From Syncephalis fuscata S228 (Eukaryota; Fungi; Zoopagomycota): DNA of 64,000 bases. The stretch is taken from assembly GCA_025786725.1 (NCBI GenBank), contig JAHLTZ010000027.1, forward strand, positions 62,001-126,000, given 5' to 3'. The position numbers were made by a program, and so were the translations under genes. The notes beneath the pieces were generated by a model, which searched no databases, had not been told where the DNA came from, and worked only from the letters and a program-made list of their open reading frames with translations. Numbering within the stretch: position 1 is the stretch's first letter; each line of letters opens with the position of its first letter. Shown here one piece after another: positions 11,648-43,465 of the stretch.

Positions 11648-13023
11648 ATTTAAAATTCAGGTAGAATAGATGACAGCTGTGCAACACAATCAAACTAAAC
11701 ACTAGAGCAGATACGATTCAAACAAAACAATTTACAGACAGTATGTTGGCAAGAGAAATGAGAATGAGAATATAATGCTACTTTAAAGCAGTTTTCATAC
11801 TAAGTAATTGCTTAGCAGTTAATTAAGCGCAATATTTCACACGACTATATTGCTCCGGTGTAGCTATACTCAAATAATGCATCGTTTAGCACTATTATGT
11901 TGCGATATTATTTTGTTGTCATTTTGCCAGCACTGTACAAGGAAATCAGCTTTTTAGTAATTTCACCTGCCATATGAGCAATAAGATAGCTAGTATTGTG
12001 CACAAACATTGTAAATATTCATCATAAATAATTTAAGGCGACAGAAACAATAATAAATATTCAATATGAATACAAGGTAAGTTGAATACTCAGTTATTTA
12101 CAGTAAAAAACAAATATTTACGACGACAATTATAGTGCTTTAAAACTATAATAATAACAATTTCATCTAAAAACACAATATTTATTTGTTTTGATAAGCC
12201 AAGTTCTTTAATGTGATAATGTTGTTTTAACAAATACCAACTATTGCTGTTATGTAAAGATCATGCGATAAGGCAAAATGATGCTCAGAATTGTAATGTC
12301 TTTATTGCTGGAAAAAGCACACTGGTTCTGTATCCGTTTTCTAACTGCATACCAAATACTAGCTAATCCACTTCTACGATTTCTAACGTATAAAAATCAC
12401 ATAATTTATAATGATCATATTTGGTAATGCAAACATCAAACATTCAACTCGAATAGCCTATTGAATTATCAGAATTGCTACAATCAAGATTACTGCGACG
12501 ATTAGCTTGTAGTAGCTGTACCTTGACTGAAATGCAGCTCCATATTCTATTAGCATATACTTTGTTAAAAATATATTACTTTGATTACACTACCAATACG
12601 TTTTCTCTATTCTCTTATCGCTTAATCATCATTTATAATATCCAATATTCAAAGCTGCAATAATATAGTTTTGGCATTGATACGAATGACGCGACTATGA
12701 CAATCATCTAAATCATGTTCACTGCAAATATATTAAATTACAGTTTCAAATATAATAAATTTAACAATAGTTTGTTTTTAGTCGTATTCTATTTTAACTT
12801 TTAGATTTAGAAATAAGTGATAAATAACCTATTTTGCCATTGACAATCTGACTAGCTTATTAATTATAATTTACACATAAAACATTAAATTAAATATGTA
12901 TTTGGTCTATATAATTACAGCACTAGCAAGAATGGTTGCTTTACAAGCTAAATAATCAAATGTTAAATACAGCAGTAACTATCTTTATTTATTATTTACA
13001 TTTAAAAGACATGCGCCAATTGA

Positions 13024-14896
13024 CTATCCATGCTGATGTTCAACGCTTAAATGCTTTTTTGCAAATTCACGAGTCGATTGCCAGTATGTTGAGATCCCTT
13101 CTATAGCAGTACTACATTCAACAGTTGTCATTCCACCAAGTGGTTCTGTATCTTTGGTTCAGTTAATTGGTGGATGCGACCATTTTATATAAGAACAGAT
13201 AAGAATATAAGTGCACGCACCATATAGGCTGTATCAAGCGTAAAGTCTATTTTAAATACTTCATTTGGTTCTTGAGGCATTACAATCTTGCCATATTTAA
13301 GATAAAAGATTGGAAATAGTATATGTGTGAAAAGAGCTACTAAAGTAATACATGCCATCTAATTTAGTATGTTAGTATCATAATTTAGCACATTGAATAT
13401 TTTACCAGTATAAATCTACGGCGGCCATCTGGATGATTTCTAAGTTTGTAGGAAATGAATCCAAACCATGACACTATTAATGGAATTTAGTCAAAACTAA
13501 ATACCTCAATTTGCGCATTAACTTACCAAATCCGCAGAATATTGCAATAGCAAGCCATGATATCGAAATCGCATATACCCAGAAATCATATCTTTTTGTA
13601 ACTTTGAAATATCATAATCTCCACTTATATTACTAGTCATTTTGATCCTAATATTCGTAAAATGTTTACTGTGGTATCAATAATAGTAATAAGCCAAACA
13701 GGTATTATCGCTTTTTTTGAAAATAGCTTTTTGCCAATAATGGACCTATAAATCAAACATTAAACACTATATAACCAACTTAACGATAACATACCAATGC
13801 AAAAGTATTATATCAAAAGGTATTCCTGATAAAAGCGTGTAAACATTAAAAAGAATTGGTGCTACATATGCATTGTGTAGAGCAGTCAGATGTATAAGGA
13901 AAACTAGTATATAATCATTAGTTGTATATTTTAAAATAGATTGAATCTACTTACAAATACAGTATATAATACTGATAACAAATGCGATCAAAAGCAGATT
14001 CCGTTTCAACAGCTTAAATCTTGCCAACATTATAGTACGAGTACATGCATACAACAAAACACCCAACACCTGTAGCAATACAGTTAGAATTATACACGTG
14101 TTTAATTATATTACTTACTATGGCAAAATATGTCCATTTGTAGGCAATATATGTGTGTGAAAAGAATATCTCATTCCATGGATTGGGTTCTACTAACAGT
14201 TTAGTATTGATATAGCAGGCATTTTATATAATTCACCTTGTTCAGCAGTATAATGAAAGTTTGTATAGTTTTTAGATATTTCCCATGGTATATTATAATC
14301 GAATGTTTTCATTACTACTGTTCTAATTGAGCTTGATACTGAAAATCTATTCTGTAACTTATCAAAATAATACGCAACACAATTGTGACCTAAATAAAAA
14401 TGTGGTGGCCGATATGAGGATAGAATAAGGAGCTTGACTGGTGGAAGTCCCATACGTGATGATTGCTGAATCAATCCATTTGCTGCTTGATTGATCTAAA
14501 TACAGTTAGCACATGTCTATCTATTATAATATAAACACTTACTCGCTCTTCGGTTTACAGTAACTCAGTAAACGATAATAATAACCTATGACTAGTGCAA
14601 AGTCAGGATATTTAGATGCATTATTAATAATATTTTGAATTGCTAGGTCGGAAGCATTAACTGGCGGAAAAGAGCATTTTATGCTTGGTTCTGTATATAT
14701 AGGGTATGTCCAGACAACTACAATCCCTTCATAATATCGTGCTGAGACTCGGGATGAAGGTATAGATCAGTTAAGTGATAAGATACTAGCTCTTTGGTAC
14801 CATTGAAAAGAGTGATTTTTGCACGAATATAGTTGATTGTATTGATATACAAATAAATAACAATAACACCAATTGTTGGTATTTTGAAAATAACAT
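13024..14896 (-). CDS. Signal peptide + ectodomain + 7TM receptor-like protein, tandem copy 1 (several frameshifts; possible pseudogene)
   Basis: Paralog of the genes at 16012-17882 and 18905-20756 with matching intron positions. Small deletions at ~14837 and ~13150-13190 relative to copy 2. Confidence 0.65.
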
Positions 14897-16011
14897 GCTG
14901 AAATTCAGAATAGAAAGTAACAAGGCTATATCCTCAGTGGATTTGAAGTGTATTATTATATAGTAAATAGCCATATAGCTTCATGCAAAGTCGCAAGCAT
15001 ATACAAACTAGCTTTGTGGCACAGGTCTTTTATATTGGTCTTCATACAATATCGAAAATTGGTAGCTAGTAGTTTATATGTAACATATGTTATTGTATGC
15101 AAATAGTGTACACTTGGAATGCATATTCGCCTACATAAGCTACATAGAATAGCATTCTAAATGTAAATGTATATCGCTTTTGTCGTATATTTAATAAATG
15201 CATTGGTTTAGAATAGCCAGAATTTAAATATTATTATAAGCCTTATTAAAACAATATAATGGATTTAAAACATTTTGCACCATCTATAGACTTGCATGGA
15301 AAGTGTTTAGCATTATGATGGTACCAATTGTGCATGCAGCTTGCGTTGTTTTTTTGTTCTGAAATTATGCCTAACTTACATTCCATTATCGCACTTTTAC
15401 AAATTTGCTCACGAGAACATAGTCAAAAACCTATTGACACTGGTAGTTAGCGAATAGTTCTGTAAACAAGCCAACAACTGGCCTGTCTGAGCGCAGAAAC
15501 GGATTCATAAATAGTATTTAATACCATTGTAGCAGATGAAAAAGTGGTAATAGCAAATAAATGATGCTTTAGATGCCATTTGGATACAGCGTCCATCAAT
15601 AAAAACCCATATTGATTTGGATGTGCCTGTGCTAATTAACCAACAATCTTGTAAATCAGCTTTCATTTCTTATTCGTCCCAGAAGTGATGTAGCTGCCGC
15701 ATTAATGCTAACCAGTCAAGCCCTATTTAGTTTAAATGTACTAGCGCAGTTATACTTACATTCAAATCAAAAATATCCCGTTTGTCTGGTCTTGTATTTG
15801 GCTGTGCTTTGTAGATTTATTAATGAGTAGTAAATAGGTTATTTAAGATTGATAGACTGGCTAACTTGTTAACTATAATCTATTTTTGTTATATTCACAA
15901 TACTATCAACAACCATTCTGGATAAACCGAGTAATCAAATACAGCAAAAACTATTTATTTTTTATTAGCTATTTAAAAAACATAAGTCGGCTGATTATTT
16001 ATAATAGTACG

Positions 16012-17882
16012 TTAACGATTAATTATTCTTGTAAGTTTACGAGTCAACTGCCAACGTATTGGGGCATCCTCTACTTTTGAATCGTATCCAACAGTTGTCA
16101 TTCCACCAAGTGGTTCTCGTATCTTTGGCTCAGTTAATTCCGGTGAATGTGGCCATTTTATACCAAGAACAGATAAGAATATGAGTGCACGCACCATATA
16201 GGCTGTATCAAGCGTAAAGTCTATTTTAAATACTTCATCAGGTGTTAAAGTATGGGAACCTTTGAAATATTTGATATAATAAATTGGAAATAGTATATAT
16301 GTAAAAATGGCTAGTACAGTAAGACATGCCAACTAGTGCGATAGGTAAGTATTACAAATCAATAAAATAAAGCTAGTAGATATTTTACCTGTATAAACTT
16401 GCGATGACCATCAGGATGTTTCTAAGCTTATAAGCTATAAATCCAAGCCATAACACTATCAATAATGTTAGTTTAAACTAAATGGTTTAGTTTATGTTAA
16501 CTTACAAAGTGCACATAATGTTACGATAGTAACCCATGGTAGAACAATACATCTAATTATATCAAAGATAGCGTAGAATAATGATGTTTTAGCATTAGTT
16601 TTGTTCCAATAAATGAGTCCTATTGAGTCTACAATTCGTAAAATGTTTACTGTGGTATCAATAAAAGTAATAATCCAAACAGGTATCATTGCTTTTTTTG
16701 AAAATAGCTTTTTGCCAATAATGGACCTATAAATCAAACATTAAACACTATATAACCAACTTAACGATAACATACCAATGCAAAAGTATTATATCAAAAG
16801 GTATTCCTGATAAAAGCGTGTAAACATTAAAAAGAATTGGTGCTACATATGCATTGTGTAGAGCAGTCAGATGTATAAGGAAAACTAGTATATAATCATT
16901 AGTTGTATATTCTAAAATAGATTAAATCTACTTACAAATACAGTATATAATACTGATAACAAATGCGATCAAAAGCAGATTCCGTTTCAACAGCTTAAAT
17001 CTTGCCAACATTATAGTACGAGTACATGCATACAACAAAACACCCAACACCTGTAGCAATACAGTTAGAATTATACACGTGTTTAATTATATTACTTACT
17101 ATGGCAAAATATGTCCATTTGTAGGCAATATATGTGTGTGAAAAGAATATCTCATTCCATGGATTGGGTTCTACTAACAGTTTAGTATTGATATAGCAGG
17201 CATTTTATATAATTCACCTTGTTCAGCAGTATAACGGAAGGCTGCGTAGTCACTTTTTATCACATTACTTGGGAAACTTGTTAAATCCACTGTTGATGTT
17301 TTTATTGAGTTTAGTCCCGCAAATCCTTGTGTTATATCTGTGAAATAACCCATAACATAATCGTAATCGAAAATAAAAATGATTGGTTTATCTAACAATA
17401 AAATAAAGAGCTTGATTTGTGGAAATCCTGCGTGTGATAATTGCCGAATTAATTCTTCTATTGCTTGACTAAACTAAACTACAGTTAATATATATATATA
17501 TATATGCTATAGCAGAGGCACTTACTTGTTTATTATTTGTGCATACATAGCCTAAATAATATGCGTTGTCTATGATTAACGCAAAATCTGGATATTTAGA
17601 TGCACTTTTAGCAATATTTTGAATTGCTGGGTCGGAAGCATTAACTGACGGAAAAAAGCATTTTGTGCTTCGTTTTTCATATCCAGGAAAGCTCCATACA
17701 AGTGCAATCCCTTCATAATGATTGTGCTGAGACGCAGGATGAAGGTATAGATCAGTTAAAGGATAAGATACTAGCTCTTTGGTACCATTGAAAAGAGTGA
17801 TTTTTGCACGAACATAGTTGATTTGTATTAATATACAAATAAATGACAATAACACCAATTGTTGGTATTTTGAAAATAACAT
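16012..17882 (-). CDS. Signal peptide + ectodomain + 7TM (GPCR-like) protein, tandem copy 2
   Basis: Spliced product: signal MLFSKYQQLVLLSFICILIQINYVRA, a ~180-aa ectodomain, juxtamembrane EQEPNPWNEIFFS, then seven hydrophobic segments ending in FTLDTAYMVRALIFLSVLGIKWP and a polar tail. One 1-nt deletion at ~16420. Confidence 0.75.
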
Positions 17883-18904
17883 GTTGAAATTCAGAATAGA
17901 AAGTAACAAGGCTATATCCTCAGTGGATTTGAAGTGTATTATTATATAGTAAATAGCCATATAGCTTCATGCAAAGTCGCAAGCACATACAAACTAGCTT
18001 TGTGGTACAGGCCTTTTAAATTGATGTGCAGTCAATATCAAAGAATTAATAGCTAATAATTGGTGAATAATGGTAAATAAAATTTATTTATAGATATATG
18101 TTGGCTGTTCAAAGTATAATATGGGTAGACATATGCTATGATATTCATGTTATTCCAACTCCCACGAATTCACGTGGTGATACCAATTTTTCATGGGACT
18201 TGAATTGTTTCTTTGTTCTTGAAACACATGCATAATTCTATATTTCCATTGCTATAATTATTCGGTTTTAATGGTAAAAGCACGATCAAAATTTACTAAC
18301 ACCCATGTTCATCAAACATTGCCAAGAACAAATCAAAGGCTGACCTGTTTAAATGCAAAATCGGATCCAGCAAAAGTAATTCAAAGGTTAAAGCAGTATC
18401 ATTAGGCCTTTGAGTGATGTTATTCATATGAACGAAAGAAATGAAAACAAGATAGAAATCGTTTGAATATCATTTAAATGAAATGTCTATTAGTAAAAAA
18501 TTGTTTATATAGTTAATTGAATATGCGTATATTAATGAGCCAAGCCTTTGTGAGTTGATTTTCATCCTTATACATCTCAACATTGACGTGAATAACACAT
18601 CAATTCCTAACATTTGAATCATATTTAGTTTAATATGATGGTGCATTTTTAAGTATAAGCAATTTAGAAATTGTTTTTTGTCTAGCTTTATATTTAATTT
18701 TACTTTCTAGATTTATTAATGAATGGTAAATGGACTATTGCGCTTACAATAATATCAGCAATTACCGATTTATAAGCTAAATAATTAAACATTAAATACA
18801 GAAATTGCTAATTGAATACGGCAATAGCTATTTCCTATTTAAATTCAAAAAACATGTCAATTAACTATTTACGAGGATACTTGGTGCTTAATTACATTTT
18901 AATT

Positions 18905-20756
18905 TCACAGGCTAATTTTTGTATTGGCGCTTTCCTTTGTATTTGTGTCACATCCAATAGTAGTCATTCCACCAAGTGGTTCTCGTATTGCTGGCTCACT
19001 TAAATTTGGCGAATATGGCCATTTTATACCAAGAACTGATAGAAATACGCATGCACGGATCACATAGGCTGTATAAACATAAAGTCTGATTTAAACACTT
19101 GATCAGGTGCTGGTCCATTTAATACTGGCGGGTAAAAGATATAACGAAACGGGAATACTAGATACGTGAAAAGGGCTATGACAGTAAGGCATGCCAGCTA
19201 GTGTAGAATATAAGTACTATAATCTAGCACACTAAATATATCAGAGATTTTACCTGTGTAAATTTACGATGGCCATCAGGATGTTTCCTAAGCTTATAAG
19301 ATATGAATCCGAACCATAGCACTATCAAATGGCAGTTAGCTTAAATTACTTTTAGTTAGTTTATGTTGACTTACAAAATGCACAGGATGTTGCAATAGCA
19401 ATCCATGATAGCGCACTATACACAGAGCCATCGAAAAAAGCGTTGAATAATGATAAAATAATTGTTTTTTCACCCCAGTAAATGCCTGTTATCAAGCCTA
19501 CAAGCCTTAGAATGTTTACTATAACATCAATGATGATAATAAGCCAAAAAGGAATTATCATTATTATTGAAGATACTTTTTTGCCAATAAATGATTAAAA
19601 ACCAAATGTTAAATATTATACTATCGATGTCTATTAATCGCATACCAATGCAAAAGTATTATATCAAAGGGTGTTCCTGCTAAAAAAACGTAAAATCTTA
19701 AAAATATTAAGGATAAATATGTTTTTCCTAAAGCAGCCAAATGTATAAGGAAAACTAGTATATAATCATAAGTTGTATATTTTAGAATATATTGGATTTA
19801 CTTACAAATGCAGTATACAAAACCGGTAACGAATGCAATCAAAAGCAGATTTTGCTTCAGTATCTTTAATCTTGTCAGTCTTATAATACGAGCACATGTA
19901 TACAACAAGACACCCAATACCTATAGCAACACAATAAGAATGCTATATCTGTTTGACTTTACTGCTCACCAAGGTAAAATATGTCCATTTGTAAGCGATA
20001 TATGTGTGCGAGAATAATAGCTCATTCCATGGGTCAGGTTCTATTAATAGTTTAATATTGATATGATGGCAGTTTTAAATGGTTTACCTATTTCAGCAGT
20101 ATAGCGGAGGGCTGTGTAGCCGTTAACATTTGCCATATCTTTTGGAAAGTTATACTCCTCCACCACTGATGTTGTTATTGGGTCTGATTCCACAAACCCA
20201 TTTACCGTATCGGAAAAGATGCTTATAATATAATCGTAACCTAAATCAAAAAATGGTGACCAATATGAAAATAGAATAAACAGCTTGACTGGTGGAAATC
20301 CTGCGCGCAATAATTGCCGCATCAATTCATCTATTGCTTGACTGATCTAAATTGCAGTTATTGTATATATTTATTTTATACCATAATAAAATACTTACCT
20401 GTTCTGTGGTATCACACTTAGCAGAAAAAGAGTATTCATAGTCTGAGATTAATGCAAAATCTGGATAGCTAGATGCAATTTCAGCAATATTTTGGATCGT
20501 TGGATCGGAGGCATTAACCAGCGGGAAAGAGCATTTTGTGTTTGATTCTGTATAATTAAGGAAATTTGATACAAGTGCAGTGCCATTATAAGGACGCCGA
20601 TGAGCTCCGGATAAAGAAATGCATCGGTTAATTTATAAGATATTTGGTCGCTGGTGCCATTAAAAAGAGTGAGTTTTGCACAAACATAGTTGATTTGTAT
20701 TAATATACAAGTAAATAGCAATAACACCAATTGTTGGTATTTTGAAAAAAAAACAT
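18905..20756 (-). CDS. Signal peptide + ectodomain + 7TM receptor-like protein, tandem copy 3
   Basis: Same exon layout (EPDPWNELLFS; RACVFLSVLGIKWP; EPLGGMTT). Apparent frameshifts in the poly-T after the ATG and near 20600. Confidence 0.7.
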
Positions 20757-21580
20757 GTTAGAATTAAAACAGAAAGGGATGGGGTTACATTTTAAATGGA
20801 CTATACTTTATTATTATATAGTAAGTAGTCGTATAGCTTCGTATAATGTCACATGCAAGTATAACTGGTTTTGTGGTATAGGCCTTTTACATTAGTGTGC
20901 AGGCAATATTAGAGAACTAGTAGCTAGCAATCTTGTAGATAAGTAATTTACAATGATGTTTATTTATAAGTATTTACAACATAAGCTGTTACAAGCATAT
21001 AAATATTATTATACCTGAAACATTAGTTAAAAGGCCAGTAGTTTTTAGAATGTATATGGATATGCATAAGCTGTAAATTACATGAAACAACATTCCAAAT
21101 GTGAATGTATACTGTTTTTATCATAATAAAGACATTGGTTTACAACATTCAAAGAATTGATTTTATTATTATTACCGCAGTATAGTAAATTTAGCAATAC
21201 TGTTACAGCATCTACAAAACCATATTAAAAAATCAACATTATGGTGGCAATATGTATGCAAGCAGCCTAAAATGTCTTTTTATTTTGAAGTGTACGTGTA
21301 ATTATAATGTTTAGATGAAAACATTGTCATAGTTACTAATATTTTAGATTGTATTGGCTACTCCGCTTGTTAATAATAAATAATACAATAATTTATTTGT
21401 AAATAATAGGAAATAGAATGTAATGAATGTGTAATAATAATACATCATTAGCTAACTACTTCAAAAGCTATTTATTATGACTACTAGTTAAATTGATACT
21501 CAGTAAACATGGCGTGGTAGTTAGTATTAACCAGCTTAATTATTAATTACTTGATAATATTCCTCAAAAAGGCTGTTCAT

Positions 21581-27259: not shown

Positions 27260-29395
27260 CTAAGTAGCAGCTTCGATTTTAAGCCGTTTAGCACTACCAC
27301 TTCTTTCAGGTTTTCGCGTAGACTTCAACAAATTTCGTAGCTTATTTAGCTTAACAACTGAAAGGCTACGTGTTTGGCCTTTAAGACCAAAATAGGAAAC
27401 GCTTAAGGTTTGTCCTGGTACTATTTTTCCATTAGCATTAATCAGATCGAGTTGAATGTATCCAGAGTAAACCCAATTCTCAATAAAAGGCACATTTTCT
27501 GGTGGTGTAATATCAATACTTAGTGTAGTAGATGCTTGGGCTGGCACAGTGATTGCTTTGCTAAATTTAACACTGGCCGGTGCATCACGATGTTCTGGCG
27601 GGTAAATGGGCTGGCCTCGAGCATCATATCCTCGGACAGTTGCCGCAGGTAAATGTGAAACTCGGTAAACTTTGACTGTGGAACCAAAATTACTGATTTC
27701 CAATCTCTTGTTAATGGTCGCAGCTACACCTGTAGGATATTCGCCAAGGAGTAGCATCGATGGGTTAACGCGTGTTGTCTCGGCAATGGCCCGTTGAATA
27801 TTGAATAGTCCCGAGCCTTGTTGGGCCACCGAACTAATAAGCGGCGAAAAGGGTGATCGTACAGGCTTGGATGTAGTTTGAAGTAGAGATCGAAGAGCAT
27901 GAATATCTTTTTGAACGCCGTGTTTTTCGAAATAAAGAGCTACGGCAGCGGCCATATAAGGAGCAGCAAATGAAGTACCACTTATATGATTGAATGTGGC
28001 AATTTTTTTACCATTCATAGTAGTACTTAATAATGGCGAGCTAGGTGCAGTAATGTCTGCATTGCTTGTAAGCCATGGTGTAGGACCCCAAGCAGCACGT
28101 GTATCTCCGTAGAATTCATCGGCTGTAGGTTCAACGCCAAATTGATTTAATAGATTAAGTTCAACTTTGGGCTTGCGATCCAACATCTGTCTAATATATT
28201 GAATATTTGGTATGGCCAGTTCAAAAAATGGCACTGAACAAGAAAAAGTGTCATAAATTTGACCATACTGAGCAGCCGATGCAATAACACCAAGAGCATT
28301 AGCTTGCTTAGCCTTTTGGATTAGCTGATCAATTTTGCAACTATTTGAGGGCGATACAACATAGCTGCCCATTACGTTATTTGTAATATCGCATGAAGCC
28401 ATTGCCTTTTCGTCAGTTAGAGATGTAGCCAGAGTAGCATAGATTTTTCGCCGATTGCTTTGTGGCATAGGACAAACAATATTATACGGGATACGAAGCG
28501 CTTTAGGATCGCCAGTAATTGAAAACCAATACGATGAAGGATCGGGCATCTCAGCTCCTGATACCGAAATAACGGAAGGTGCTATACCAGGTGCACGTGC
28601 CTGCCACATCGATTGCTCAACAAGGTTGCCAGCGGATACAATAACCGTTAAGCCTTTTATAGCAGCAGATTGAGCATAGACTACCGGCATGGTTACTGAT
28701 TCATGAGTATTGATGGACATTGATAGAAGCACAATATGCATTCCATCATCTGCGGCAACATCTAGGGCTAGTTTTATTAGACCTTCGTTTGCTGCAGACT
28801 CATCACAGCCTGCTATGCGATATGCGCCAAGTGTAGCTTTAGGAGCAATACCCACAAATGTATTTGTTTGGGCACCGATGATGCCCGCTACTTTAGTACC
28901 GTGACCATAACAATCCATTGGATCACCTCGATCCTTTCGGCTATGAATATCGGCTATAGAACGACCGTAAAGATTCATGCCAACAGCAACTCGACACTCT
29001 TTGCCAAAACAGCCACCAAGAGCTGGATGCAAGTAATCGATACCGCTATCAATTATACCAATGTTAATACCTTGACCAGTTAATTTTGCTTCTTTTGCCG
29101 CCTTTATTCCAGTAGCCTCGTATCCAGTTACTGGTTTAACAAGTCTTTTATTATTGTTTATTTTTACCATGGGATCCAAATTTTTTATAACACTGAGTTC
29201 AAAAGTCGAATCGCTATTTGTTTTGAGACGTCGTACAAGTTTAACGTAATCTAATGATGCCTGAGCCGTTTGATTGCTACTTGAATTTAACTTAGCAATA
29301 GAATCAGGTGACAAAGGTAGTGCATCAACATAAATCGTAGTATACTTTGTGCTAGCAGCCAGCAGCAAAGTAGCATAGAGTAGTACAAGTCGCAT
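27260..29395 (-). CDS. Secreted subtilisin-like S8 serine protease (Vpr-type, with PA-like insert and Fn3-like C-terminal domain)
   Basis: Intronless ORF with a signal peptide (MRLVLLYATLLLAAS), Asp (IIDSGIDYLHPALGG), His (GHGTKVAG), oxyanion Asn (SAGN), Ser (SGTSFAAP), SVAQQGSG and a C-terminal YSGYI motif. Confidence 0.92.
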   Translation of the reverse strand: MRLVLLYATLLLAASTKYTTIYVDALPLSPDSIAKLNSSSNQTAQASLDYVKLVRRLKTNSDSTFELSVIKNLDPMVKINNNKRLVKPVTGYEATGIKAAKEAKLTGQGINIGIIDSGIDYLHPALGGCFGKECRVAVGMNLYGRSIADIHSRKDRGDPMDCYGHGTKVAGIIGAQTNTFVGIAPKATLGAYRIAGCDESAANEGLIKLALDVAADDGMHIVLLSMSINTHESVTMPVVYAQSAAIKGLTVIVSAGNLVEQSMWQARAPGIAPSVISVSGAEMPDPSSYWFSITGDPKALRIPYNIVCPMPQSNRRKIYATLATSLTDEKAMASCDITNNVMGSYVVSPSNSCKIDQLIQKAKQANALGVIASAAQYGQIYDTFSCSVPFFELAIPNIQYIRQMLDRKPKVELNLLNQFGVEPTADEFYGDTRAAWGPTPWLTSNADITAPSSPLLSTTMNGKKIATFNHISGTSFAAPYMAAAVALYFEKHGVQKDIHALRSLLQTTSKPVRSPFSPLISSVAQQGSGLFNIQRAIAETTRVNPSMLLLGEYPTGVAATINKRLEISNFGSTVKVYRVSHLPAATVRGYDARGQPIYPPEHRDAPASVKFSKAITVPAQASTTLSIDITPPENVPFIENWVYSGYIQLDLINANGKIVPGQTLSVSYFGLKGQTRSLSVVKLNKLRNLLKSTRKPERSGSAKRLKIEAAT

Positions 29396-30086
29396 TGTCA
29401 ACAGCAATAGTAAAGTTTTCTAAGATTTCTATACGATGAATAAAAGAAATAAATGAATAGCAAATAACTTACATGTAAAAACAAACCATTCTTATATATT
29501 ACAAATTTATTAGCACATGAGTAACTGAAACAAAATTAAAACGCTGAATCTTTCCAAATTTGTAGTTGGCAAATAAAACAAAAATTGGTGTACCCAAATA
29601 GAGAATGACACTATACTAAATACAGTAATACCTCAATGTGAATGGATATAATAGGATGATGTTGGATTGTTTATTGATAACATCTAAACGTAATTTTGAA
29701 ACAACTTTTTACAACACCGCTAAGCGTAACATTTACTATTTGCGGTATAACGTTATTACGATTATTGTTTTGATATTAGTGTAATTTTGTCAAATAATTA
29801 CAACTAATGATTATCTACTATTTAATATGTAGTATTGGCACAAGGATGATTTACCAATATGTTACAATTATTATAGATAGGTTATTGAACATTTGTTATT
29901 AAATGATGTTTTACGACACCTACATAAAACGTTTAATCACATCATTTATTATTTTTTCTCTCTCTCTCTTTCTTTCTCTTTATTTAATAATAGTAGTTTA
30001 TTCATTTCCGTTATTAAGTGACAATATGTTAATTCACTATTACGTGGTCTATTATTATTGCAACTCTACTATTATTACATAACATG

Positions 30087-39408: not shown

Positions 39409-39867
39409 ACGTACTATTAAAATAATAAATAATTAATTTTGCAATTTATCAATGTTAATTTAGTTTTTATTTTATTATTTGTTATTTGAATAAAATATTG
39501 TTATGGTCACATCAGTATATAGTATAGGTTTTTCTGCTAGCTTGTTTTTTAATTAATATTCATTAATTTTGAATGTGAATTAAGCAGACATAAAAATATA
39601 AATCGATTGTATACAATTGAAATGAAACCACATGTTTATTACTACAAGCTTGCATAATTGAATAAACACAACTAAATGCAGTATTGTTGGTAATACAATA
39701 CAATTATTGGTTATAAATGGATAAACCGGAACATTGGCTAGAACTTAATATGAGAGTAGACTATGTGGCAATTGTCAAATGATCTTGTTTCTCGCCGAAT
39801 ACATATCTAAAGTATATTAAGCTAAAAGCTTAATTATTTGCCAATGTTGCTGTCTTGAGAGCATTGA

Positions 39868-39999
39868 TTATGAAGGACGAGTAAAAGTACGATGAACAGG
39901 AGGAGCACGACGAGCTAGGACTGGACTGGCATCCACCATAGATGTGGTGGCCACAAGAGCCACAAGGACGGTGCAGACGGCGGCAATGGAAAGCTTCAT
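39868..39999 (-). CDS. Small secreted peptide precursor, 43 aa, intronless (not in ORF track)
   Basis: MKLSIAAVCTVLVALVATTSMVDA-SPVLARR-APPVHRTFTRPS*: hydrophobic signal ending VDA|SP, a short pro-piece, a dibasic RR site and a 12-aa tail. It is a GC-rich island in AT-rich DNA, with a TATA-like TTTAAATA at ~40131-40138 and a paralog at 43186-43279. Confidence 0.8.
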   Translation of the reverse strand: MKLSIAAVCTVLVALVATTSMVDASPVLARRAPPVHRTFTRPS

Positions 40000-40170
40000 A
40001 TTGGTATTGATTGGTAAAAAATAAGTAGAAACAGCAATAGAGCTTGTTTAGTAGATAGTAGATAGTAGTGAGTATTTAAGAAGTAGAGTGTAATGATGAT
40101 ATCGCAGTTAGTTGTGTACATTTTGCGGGCTATTTAAACCTATTGTTGTGCTAAGATACCAATATTGTAA

Positions 40171-40285
40171 CATGTATGTTATGGTCTGGCCATATGCACC
40201 ATGTTTGCTATAGTCTAGACTATATGCATCATATTTTTATGGTCTAGACTATATGTAACACATCTGCTATGATTTGGCCCATAAC
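40171..40285. repeat. Four degenerate ~29-bp tandem units with palindromic core TAGTCTAGACTA, upstream of the peptide gene
   Basis: catgtatgttatggtctggccatatgcac / catgtttgctatagtctagactatatgcat / catatttttatggtctagactatatgtaa / cacatctgctatgatttggcccata. Confidence 0.7.
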
Positions 40286-42712
40286 TCCTGTGCTATACAA
40301 AAGGCGAGATTTACTTATTGCATGCACAAGTTCACTTTTCATATCCAATGACTTTATAAGCCCTTTGCTGTACCAATTGCATCTATTATAGTGTAGTAAA
40401 GGGCATAGGCCTAATGCTGCTTCTATTTTCTGCTTCTCGGTCTAGTAGATCTTATCCCTTAATTCTTTAATCTAAGTTCCTTTTGCATTTTACTTGCTAC
40501 TTTTTATTTTCTTCATTTCAAGTCTCAGGCCTATGTTGGCAGATTAGCATCCTGCATTGCGCATCTGTAAAAATACTCATTTTATTCTTCTAACTGATAC
40601 ATATGTTTATCTGTTGATTTAAATTTGTTCTTAATTATTTAAAAACATATTATTATTGGAATGTAAACCTTTCTATCAAAAGGAACTGGCAGGTCTAGCT
40701 TGTTGGTTTTTTTAAATTTTCTTTTATCTTAAAGTTGTTTTATTTCGCAATTCATTCAATTTCAGGCCTTTGCTCATATTGAGGTAGAGTGGTTGGTTAG
40801 AAACCTTTTCTTCTCTATTCTTCCTTTCCTCACTGCCCTTAGTGGCATATTATTCGTTTCAATGTTTATTATTGCCTTATGATGAAAACATAAAAATAAA
40901 ACTTTCTATTAATAGATAATAATACTAGTTTATTGTTTCTATTTATTTGCTTGACAATTATTCGCATAGTGATTAAACTGCTACGGCCCATATTGTTTTA
41001 CACCAAGTAGTAACAATATTGATGCACAAATAGATTTAATAGCCTAGTTTACTATAATCAATATGGTTTATTATAAGTTTACACACCGAGATGGCTAAGA
41101 AATCAAGGCAGACTTCACCGGAACAACAATACTGTTGCTACCTTAATATTATAGATAGGGTTTTGTAAGAATGCGAATAAGAAACACACCGAGTGATTGA
41201 ATGGTCTATTAAAATCGCATATGATTGGTCGCAAAAATAATATATATATATCATATATCAATATTAATTACCAATAACAGGCAGCTATTAAAATGCTACA
41301 ACTGGTAACTACTTATTATTTGTAAGTATATGAGCTGATAAACTGCGTTAATGATGAAATATTACAAAACATTCAAGTTCTATTATTAGTCATTTTACTA
41401 TAAAATGATAGTTTTATTCAATATCAATAAAAAGATAATCGGCGTTTGATCACATATTATTTCTGTTTAGTATCCTACAAGTTATTCAGCTTATTATTTC
41501 TATTTTGTATATATTATTGAAATAATGATACGATCATATGGAAGCATAACAATAATAGCTAACTTATCCGTTTTATCTGAAAAATACTAAGTAGTCAGTA
41601 TATAAAATTTTCTTCTTCTAGTTGCAAATTAAAGCTTTAAAAGATCTTTGTCATTACTAATAGATTGTAATCAATAAAGCATAGAATAATATAAACTCTA
41701 AAAGTGAGCAAATGAAAGTTTATGAATACTAACAGTAAAACTATAGTTTACATGATAGCAAGATGGACATATTTGATGGAGATTTACAATAAATAAAGCT
41801 AGAAATAAACAACTAGCTTTATTAATAGCGTATAATCAGTAGATCATAGAACGATATAGAGTAAAATGAATATACGATAAACACCTGATGTATAACTGAA
41901 ATAGATGAAGAAATAATGATATTATATACGTAGAAAAGCTATGAGTAAACTAATTATTACCAAGTAAAAATTATTAAGCTGCCATAGGATAGCAATATTT
42001 TTATGTAACTTTTACTGCTTAGTTACAATGCTTTTATAAAGAAAAACCTTCAGCAACACATTGTAACAATGATAATTGGTTGTTTATTATTGTGTCGTAA
42101 ACACCAACGATTCCATTATACCATGTCCACTAGCATCAACGATTCTGTTTTTAACTTGTTTATACTTGGTTATAACACTCAGATAGCTATAAAAGCACTT
42201 ATAATTATTTTATAATAAGCAATATGCATCATTCTTATACATTACGCTTTGCTCAATATTCATGTGATAATGAACTTTATTTAGTATAATCGCTCATACC
42301 AACTAATTATTGACTTGGTACATATTATTACAATAATAATAATAATAATAATAACAGTAGTGTCAATATATCTTAATAACTGATGTGGCACACTTGTATA
42401 AGTTTAGTGTAATATGCTAGTTAAATTTTGCTAATTGCTAAATACAAAGCAAACATGAACAAAGATATAGCGATTTAATTATATACAATTAAAATAAAAC
42501 CATATGTTTATTACTACAAGCTTGCATAATTGAATAAACACAACTAAATGCAGTATTGTTGGTAATACAATACAGTTATTGGTTAAAACCTAATATGGAA
42601 ATAGACTAAGTAACAATTATCAACTGATCTTGTTTCGTGCCAAATATATATTTAAAGTATATTAAGCTAAAAGCTTAATTATCTGCCAATGTTGTTATCA
42701 TAGACGCATTGC

Positions 42713-43279
42713 TTATTCTATATTTGTAAAGCATACATGCCGTATAATTAATGTCTATGTTATGTTATATAATGCTACTTACGTCCTATTAATACAAATT
42801 ATCAAACACACAAAGTGCGTGATATATGTTTAGTAAATAGTTGATAAATATACAATAGCACTTACTGGCTATTAATAAAAATTATTGAATACACGCACTA
42901 TATGGCATATGCTTAATGAATGGCTAATAATTATACAATGCAACTTACTACCTATTAATACAAGTTATTTAACCAACGCACTGTACGCATATGGTTAGTG
43001 CACAGTTGGTGAATATACAATGACACTTACCAGCTATTAATACAGTTATTAGATGCACACAAAAGCAACACATAATTAATACATAGATGTTGATATACAA
43101 TACACCTTACGCTTTAATAACGTTAATTTGTTATGGAAATAATATTCAATTAATTGGGTAACTAGTTATTGCAACTACAGCATACCACGACGGACTATAA
43201 CTGGACTGGCACCCACCATGGATGTGGTGGTTACAAAAGCCACGATGGTGGTGCAGAAGACGGCAATAGAAAGCTTTAT
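42713..43279 (-). CDS. Micro-exon secreted-peptide gene (paralog of 39868-39999; start codon reads ATA, so possibly a pseudogene)
   Basis: Exon 1 43186-43279 = (I)KLSIAVFCTTIVAFVTTTSMVGASPVIVRR+G with donor GTATGC. Micro-exons: C (43111), CTG (43031-43033), GTA (42949-42951), CCA (42866-42868), GAC (42783-42785). The last exon starts at 42717 (AA TAA) and its stop aligns with the paralog's stop and 3' UTR. Confidence 0.7.
42770..43125 (-). repeat. Tandem array of ~80-83-bp intron + micro-exon units
   Basis: Minus-strand junction motif TATTAATAG-NNN-GTAAGT recurs with exons at 42783, 42866, 42949 and 43031, plus a degenerate unit at 43111 (periods 83, 83, 82, 80). Branch-point-like TACTAAA (~42829-42835) and CACTAAC (~42994-43000) sit at the same offset. 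Confidence 0.88.
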
Positions 43280-43465
43280 GTTGATATTGATTTGTTAAAA
43301 CAAACAAGCAGAACCAACAAGAGAGTGTAGTTGGCAGGGAGTAGATAGTGGTGATTATTTGACATAAAGTAGAATTTGTTGATAATACTACTAGCTAGCT
43401 GTGTGTATTTTGCCAGCTATTTAAGTCTATGTTCATTCCGAAATATAAAGAATGTATCCTATGGA

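Follow-up and report, generated by a model that had tools for sequence, protein, structure and literature searches.

Can a gene carry a chain of exons of only three nucleotides each, and if so, does the variety of its peptides come from splicing or from change in the genome? The question is raised by a locus on the minus strand of a 64,000-nt stretch of the Syncephalis fuscata S228 assembly (contig JAHLTZ010000027.1; hereafter the window), where a first-pass annotation had recognized four such exons and proposed that, as any pattern of skipping keeps the frame and creates no stop, alternative splicing could generate a peptide library from a single gene.

A micro-exon gene and its intronless neighbour

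The micro-exons belong to one recognizable gene, copy A, and all coordinates given for it are on the minus strand. The pattern TATTAATAG-NNN-GTAAGT has exactly four matches on that strand of the window (42777-42794, 42860-42877, 42943-42960, and 43025-43042) and none in 100 shuffles. The enclosed exons are, in reading order, CTG (43031-43033), GTA (42949-42951), CCA (42866-42868), and GAC (42783-42785), separated by repeat introns of 79 nt (42952-43030), 80 nt (42869-42948), and 80 nt (42786-42865) that are 67-73% mutually alike. As had been claimed, they are real, symmetric phase-1 exons in a gene for a predicted secreted peptide. Exon 1 (43186-43279; 94 nt) begins with ATA, encodes a signal-peptide-like leader and a pro-piece ending in Arg-Arg, and finishes in phase 1 with a G before GTATGC, the donor of intron 1 (43114-43185); this intron has homologs in first position in all the array genes described below, and its 3' end is AA, not AG. 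A TATA-like box (TTAAATAG; 43417-43424), found in 10 of the 14 family copies examined, lies 144 nt upstream of the start. After the array, a last intron of 65 nt (42718-42782), homologous to the repeat unit in its 5' half, leads to the last exon (42507-42717), which opens at 42717 with AA-TAA: two coding nucleotides, the stop codon (42715-42713), a family-conserved 3' UTR, and AATAAA (42512-42507). This stop aligns with that of an intronless paralog 3.3 kb away, which fixes the reading frame. The existing annotation calls no gene in the window between 39408 and 44132, and Tandem Repeats Finder reports the array as an 83-nt repeat.

The earlier count of four overlooked a fifth unit. GTAAGG at 43110 is the donor of a typical repeat intron of 77 nt (43034-43110), and the slot before it (43111-43113), the first of the array, is preceded by AA, as against AG at the homologous first slot of other arrays; with this defective acceptor the slot would be skipped, or would yield a 1-nt exon from an AG inside it. 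A frame that includes the 1-nt exon was rejected because it misses the stop common to copy B, as was reading the arrays in phase 0 or 2, which gives stops or no paralog match; an extra pair of shorter introns within each unit was likewise discarded, the cryptic AG/GTGCGT being present in just two copy A units. The start codon is ATA compared with ATG in 15 relatives, leader position 23 is Gly where 15 of 15 relatives have Asp, and the leader differs from all 15 at five further positions. Given the ATA start and the slot with a dead acceptor, copy A is probably a pseudogene, to judge from its sequence a short and decayed member of the family.

The intronless paralog, copy B (39868-39999, minus strand), is a 43-residue open reading frame with an ATG start and is the sister of copy A. 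At the position of the copy A array it has 33 nt, or 11 phase-1 triplets. The two copies are 82% identical over exon 1 and have in common the position of the stop, the TATA-like box (40130-40137 in copy B, minus strand, homologous to that of copy A), and the 3' region (39606-39867, minus strand; about 90% identical over the last 230 nt), in which the AATAAA of copy B (39640-39635) is followed by further sequence and not by a poly(A) tail. The ordered match of the copy A array to copy B is weak (9/12, P 0.03). A 29-nt tandem repeat of 2.9 copies (40171-40255) lies directly upstream of the copy B promoter.

The window itself is AT-rich, and the closest fungal relative found in the search for its UDP-glucuronate decarboxylase gene comes from Syncephalis plumigaleata (75%). 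It also contains an unrelated gene, hydrophobic at its N-terminus, that is repeated in tandem as three ~2-kb copies 72-82% alike (12965-20927; the ORF at 17469-17960 had no Pfam match) and a 715-residue subtilisin-like peptidase ORF (27260-29407, minus strand) that the annotation splits into three short genes.

A family of array genes and intronless genes in S. fuscata

An exhaustive search returned six related proteins and a profile search 15, all of them from S. fuscata and all with a common 31-residue leader; with copy B as query, a word search and Pfam gave no match. Across the database searches the queries were exon 1, intronless genes, and database proteins; joined exon chains served for the frame and shuffle statistics and for local comparison with proteins already identified. 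No family member outside S. fuscata was found in a metagenome scan or in protein searches, the latter being blind to unannotated arrays, and the syntenic site of S. plumigaleata holds unrelated genes, with no homolog within the 6.3 kb adjoining the actin-related gene. That site (L002, 1-6200) carries part of a Copia-like reverse transcriptase along with genes for apparently secreted products, one of them a kinase whose N-terminus is hydrophobic; this content suggests a site of fast turnover.

At least eight family genes are intronless: copy B and those at loci L003, L007, L008 (two), L009, L011, and L012. At least seven are array genes. Besides copy A, with its four intact slots, these are at L004 (27 three-nt exons, after exons of 9 and 33 nt), L005 (16), L006 (38), L010 (29), the second gene of L012 (at least 29, with the leader beyond the locus), and L009, a decayed array of about 20 slots that starts with ATA and was left out of all statistics. 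Counting five proteins known from database entries alone, the family has about 20 members. Across the six arrays parsed, 143 of 149 internal exons are 3 nt long, as counted in exon lists that were drawn up for one assembly by splice signal and spacing and in places extended by hand. Every array has a distinct first intron right behind the leader and normally a last exon of two coding bases plus TAA, and the introns are all in phase 1 and mostly of 70-86 nt, the ~78-nt introns of the units being homologous tandem repeats. The database models of these genes end after a few exons, or run into introns or insertions.

Inspection by eye shows a leader with a basic N-terminus, a hydrophobic core, and a V-D-A cleavage pattern, followed by the pro-piece ending in Arg-Arg. 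This prepro region with its basic cleavage site is conserved, and the mature part is hypervariable, which supports that side of the first-pass annotation. The mature part is often Cys-rich; there are several Cys frameworks as well as Cys-free members, and no single framework is invariant. In L005 and L010 a larger exon holds another Lys-Arg site, after which comes a peptide that lacks Cys; the chains of L006 and L012 encode peptides with the CxxxC pattern also seen in the intronless P0125 and P0128. At L008 (8752-11150), two intronless Cys-rich members stand in tandem duplication, and behind each lies the degenerate remnant of a leader (9496 and 10766).

Several arrays are damaged. Two start with ATA (43279-43277 of the window, minus strand, and L009 12373-12375, plus strand) and also have damaged acceptors; most simply, the two ATA starts are independent cases of G-to-A decay, and alternatively they may reflect non-AUG initiation or editing. 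Further damaged units are found in L004 (about 12480), L010 (about 10250), and L006 (11075 and 13806), where the lesions are GG or AA in place of the acceptor AG, and a 2-nt exon, read as X in L006, that lies in a G run and may be an assembly error. With two ATA starts, non-AG acceptors, a 2-nt exon, and insertions, some of the arrays may no longer be expressed.

Single units at L004 (11122), L006 (about 11330), and L012 (20101) have a GC donor. Many array units contain a branch-like word, CTAAT/TTAAY, ~43-45 nt upstream of the acceptor. This is an unusually long way from the 3' splice site, and the word might ease inclusion of the 3-nt exon.

Probable in-order reading and the source of peptide variety

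The evidence that the micro-exons are coding and are read in order begins with L004. Thirteen consecutive codons, each formed from two exons, spell CKCQDEDGNCTSC, and the corresponding stretch of the intronless P0121 and P0129 reads CKCRDDDGYCTSC; 33 of 39 nt are identical, level with the identity of their leaders (83-86%), and none of 50,000 shuffles of exon order reaches the score. This is our strongest result for coding exons and in-order reading, and it demonstrates, for the one group in which a strong match of array to intronless sequence is found, that the joined chain and the intronless paralogs are homologous. The architecture and frame of the arrays are also established. In the long arrays, no stop interrupts the all-in phase-1 frames before the last or next-to-last junction (joint P 0.0025 against shuffled exon order in four long arrays, three genes being cut at the terminal stop). 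The L012 array, found afterwards and so out of sample, gave P 0.25, for a combined joint P of about 6e-4; had the triplets been intron-like DNA, the probability of the open frames would be about 1e-5. Cys codons built across junctions are enriched in L004 (P 0.024) and L006 (P 0.008), and the GC content of the triplet exons is 50% versus 27% for the introns.

The intronless copies lack all introns precisely, several keep the TATA-like box, and they are related to intron-bearing copies. In a tree of flanks and leaders, unrooted and leaving aside the two last-found genes, a single clade of intronless copies is rejected (p-AU 0.006), with a minimum of four forced changes; instead, copy B pairs with copy A, P0121 and P0129 pair with L004, and P0125, P0126, and P0128 pair with L006. 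Together with the absence of a poly(A) tail from copy B, these features fit a full-length cDNA recombining with a resident copy, as has been inferred for plant microexon genes without introns (PMC8831610). Parsimony on the unrooted tree points to loss rather than gain of introns, and there are strong grounds for thinking that reverse transcripts of spliced, full-length mRNAs repeatedly recombined with family copies, and that the resulting intronless genes kept the promoter.

Reverse transcription is active in this genome, as judged from insertions with target-site duplications. A retroelement of ~400 nt, together with longer ones that have the same end, accounts for six insertions inside arrays, all antisense to the gene (L005 11250-11570; L006 10190-11000, 11505-11870, and 13100-13485; L009 12860-13690; L010 10746-11148). 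Target-site duplications are present where clear (16 nt in L010). By eye the element has a tRNA-promoter-like head and a tail of TAAAA repeats, and it had no match in ARAGORN or Rfam. In 276 kb, no copy was found outside the micro-exon arrays, and five of the six sit ~16 nt past a donor; the element is possibly a repeat-targeting SINE or LINE.

Gain and loss of units, also envisaged in the first-pass annotation, has evidently taken place by tandem duplication: there are 4-38 units per gene, with runs of identical exons (GAG x3, GCG x3) and two-unit and multi-unit block duplications. Recent duplicate units carry identical exons, and the closest introns are found within the same gene, not between genes. 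Within genes, exons have diverged by 64-72% versus 18-34% for introns, and 48 of the 64 possible triplets are in use. When units were paired by their upstream intron, exons mismatched at 60% of sites versus 13% in the downstream intron, which had been left out of the pairing. Units whose flanks differ by ~3% likewise have exons differing at 60% of sites, wobble positions included, near the value for unrelated pairs; these pairs were picked by flank similarity and are biased.

We consider it likely that the family consists of array genes with full inclusion of their exons, which evolve by duplication and fast exon divergence and are copied back as intronless genes. The repeat unit is one ~78-nt intron plus one 3-nt phase-1 exon, and the chain of units would encode the mature peptide after Arg-Arg, a presumptive Kex2-type site that would divide the prepeptide into signal peptide, pro-piece, and mature peptide. 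Since the triplet is in phase 1, every mature residue would be built across an exon junction, and because whole units duplicate, one event would add one residue in frame. The main mRNA very probably contains all exons in order, and there is a strong case that duplication or loss of units adds or removes single residues. It also appears very probable that the triplets diverge far faster than the introns through selection on the peptide combined with homogenisation of introns within a gene; homogenised introns are known from spidroin genes, and by analogy these two processes can explain the contrast between exons and introns (PMC9779670).

A further step, which we regard as possible but doubtful, would make the arrays a dedicated generator of diversity at codon resolution, in which introns isolate the triplets so that each can be inserted, deleted, or rewritten alone, and successful peptides become fixed as intronless genes. 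Such a generator would operate with a rate of change far above background and with some skipping possible as well. A related proposal, in our estimate unlikely, is that the introns serve as homology arms for targeted diversification, triplets being swapped by short-tract gene conversion or by an error-prone RNA-templated step. It would account for the 60% versus 13% mismatch in the unbiased pairing, for the same 60% beside flanks ~3% different in the biased pairs, and for the use of 48 triplets; however, homogenisation and selection acting on old exons give the same pattern without special machinery (compare spidroins; PMC9779670), recent duplicates have identical exons, introns are most alike within a gene, and no dedicated enzyme was identified.

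We assign a rather low probability to combinatorial splicing of the kind known from schistosome micro-exon genes (MEGs), in which each array would yield a library of skipped isoforms and the architecture would be kept for that reason. Tiny exons are easily skipped, all exons here are symmetric, so that the frame survives skipping, and single skips do almost no harm to copy A or to the Cys-free arrays (stops in 0 of 16 cases in L005 and in one in L010). It is also correct, as first reported, that all 16 inclusion patterns of the four copy A exons are free of stops; they give 16 distinct peptides, among them the five quoted as examples. The property itself is at chance level: four random triplets have it with P=0.22-0.32, or P 0.40-0.48 given an open full isoform, and P=0.31 at the family's own T frequency. 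Depletion of T at exon position 3, which had been suggested as a check, is contradicted by the arrays, in which 36 of 143 three-nt exons (25%) end in T versus 17% T at first codon positions of ordinary genes; T-ending exons are how Cys codons arise. Nor is there a sign of design for stop-free skipping, since single skips create stops in 6 of 117 and 1 of 27 cases (4.7 and 1.2 expected from shuffled exon order), and with random 50% inclusion 9-46% of the isoforms of long arrays would be truncated. With T not depleted and skip-made stops at chance, the sequences bear no mark of selection for skipping, and the Cys spacing and the match to intronless paralogs, which need consecutive exons to be read together in full, count against it. 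Skipping may occur, especially in the Cys-free arrays; the peptide variety appears to stem from change in the genome, not from stop-free exon skipping.

The reverse order of events, in which the ancestral peptide genes had no introns and a mobile intron then entered them at three-base intervals, is very improbable. The near-identity of introns within a gene beside unrelated exons would suit it, as would the match of the joined chain to intronless genes, but it offers no reason for insertion every 3 nt in phase 1; the GAG and GCG runs and block duplications attest duplication of whole units, and distinct first and last introns at the same positions in all arrays would mean that the same invasion took place no fewer than four or five times on the tree. 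Finally, a non-coding minisatellite with accidental splice-like words can be dismissed for practical purposes: although copy A is unannotated, lacks an ATG, and registers as an 83-nt repeat, the invariant AG/GT around GC-rich hypervariable triplets, the open frames, the motif held in common with intronless paralogs, and the constant placing of the array after a signal-peptide-like exon and before a conserved stop all speak against it.

Relation to known systems

With up to 38 mostly consecutive 3-nt exons, the array genes of S. fuscata are near the physical limit of exon size, and they offer a direct test system for how the spliceosome joins exons too small for recognition, with the intronless counterparts as natural controls. 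They also represent a route to new secreted peptides by one residue per step, and many repeated losses of all introns of a gene in one genome. The literature searched, with most subscription papers outside its scope, contained no description of the family or of chains of 3-nt exons, and no precedent for efficient inclusion of dozens of them in a row. Annotation missed or mis-modelled every one of the arrays examined in this mycoparasite peptide repertoire, a sign that other genomes could conceal comparable families.

Syncephalis hosts are mainly Mucorales, and S. fuscata belongs to the Zoopagales; members of the genus are obligate mycoparasites (PMC13188720). The leader, dibasic sites, Cys frameworks, fast turnover, and lifestyle together suggest that the peptides may be effectors, or antimicrobial peptides against host fungi or competing microbes, and some of them could serve as antifungal leads.

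Conotoxin-type precursors combine a conserved prepro region with a hypervariable, Cys-rich mature peptide. The S. fuscata precursors resemble them and mussel MgCRP-I in the conserved signal and pro region, the basic cleavage site, the hypervariable mature peptide with Cys frameworks, and the large number of copies, gained and lost; to our knowledge, mature peptides of the MgCRP-I or conotoxin type are not split into single-codon exons. Pfam and PDB sequence searches gave no homology to Cys-rich prepro peptide superfamilies. MgCRP-I is a superfamily of just this prepro-conserved, mature-hypervariable kind (PMC4558851).

The intronless members had no significant Pfam, PDB sequence, or fold match. 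The structure model of P0128 is a helical hairpin (pLDDT 88), for which a fold search gave no significant match (best E 4.3, none with E < 0.001). The alpha-hairpinins are CxxxC helix-loop-helix peptides, and the CxxxC pairs in P0125, P0128, and the L006 and L012 chains are like theirs, a resemblance only.

At the level of gene structure, plants have microexons of 1-3 nt in APC11 and VPS55 that are spliced, with intronless paralogs formed by loss mediated by reverse transcription (PMC8831610). Those are single conserved microexons in housekeeping genes, in contrast to chains of dozens encoding a variable peptide (PMC8831610). Spidroin genes share with the arrays a unit of one exon plus one intron, introns homogenised within a gene and diverging between genes, and alternating higher-order units; their exons, however, are large and homogenised along with the introns, whereas those of S. 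fuscata are of 3 nt and maximally divergent (PMC9779670).

The closest parallel in architecture is with the schistosome MEGs, reported only from flatworms, whose exons are mostly of 15 nt (6-81 nt), whose introns span 0.1-5 kb, and whose diversity comes from alternative splicing (PMC4350168, PMC10526429). Both belong to parasites, have a coding region made mostly of tiny symmetric exons, were overlooked by automatic annotation, and underwent lineage-specific expansion; MEG products are secreted and have a signal peptide, and those of S. fuscata, with their signal-peptide-like leader, are probably secreted too. In S. fuscata, however, the exons are of 3 nt, the introns are homologous tandem repeats of ~78 nt, intronless derivatives abound, and full inclusion is what the sequence statistics favour; the searches found nothing similar to MEGs in sequence, all matches being to S. 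fuscata. Given these differences in sequence, exon size, introns, and source of variation, the family is best seen not as a member of the MEGs but as a convergent, extreme variant of the micro-exon gene.
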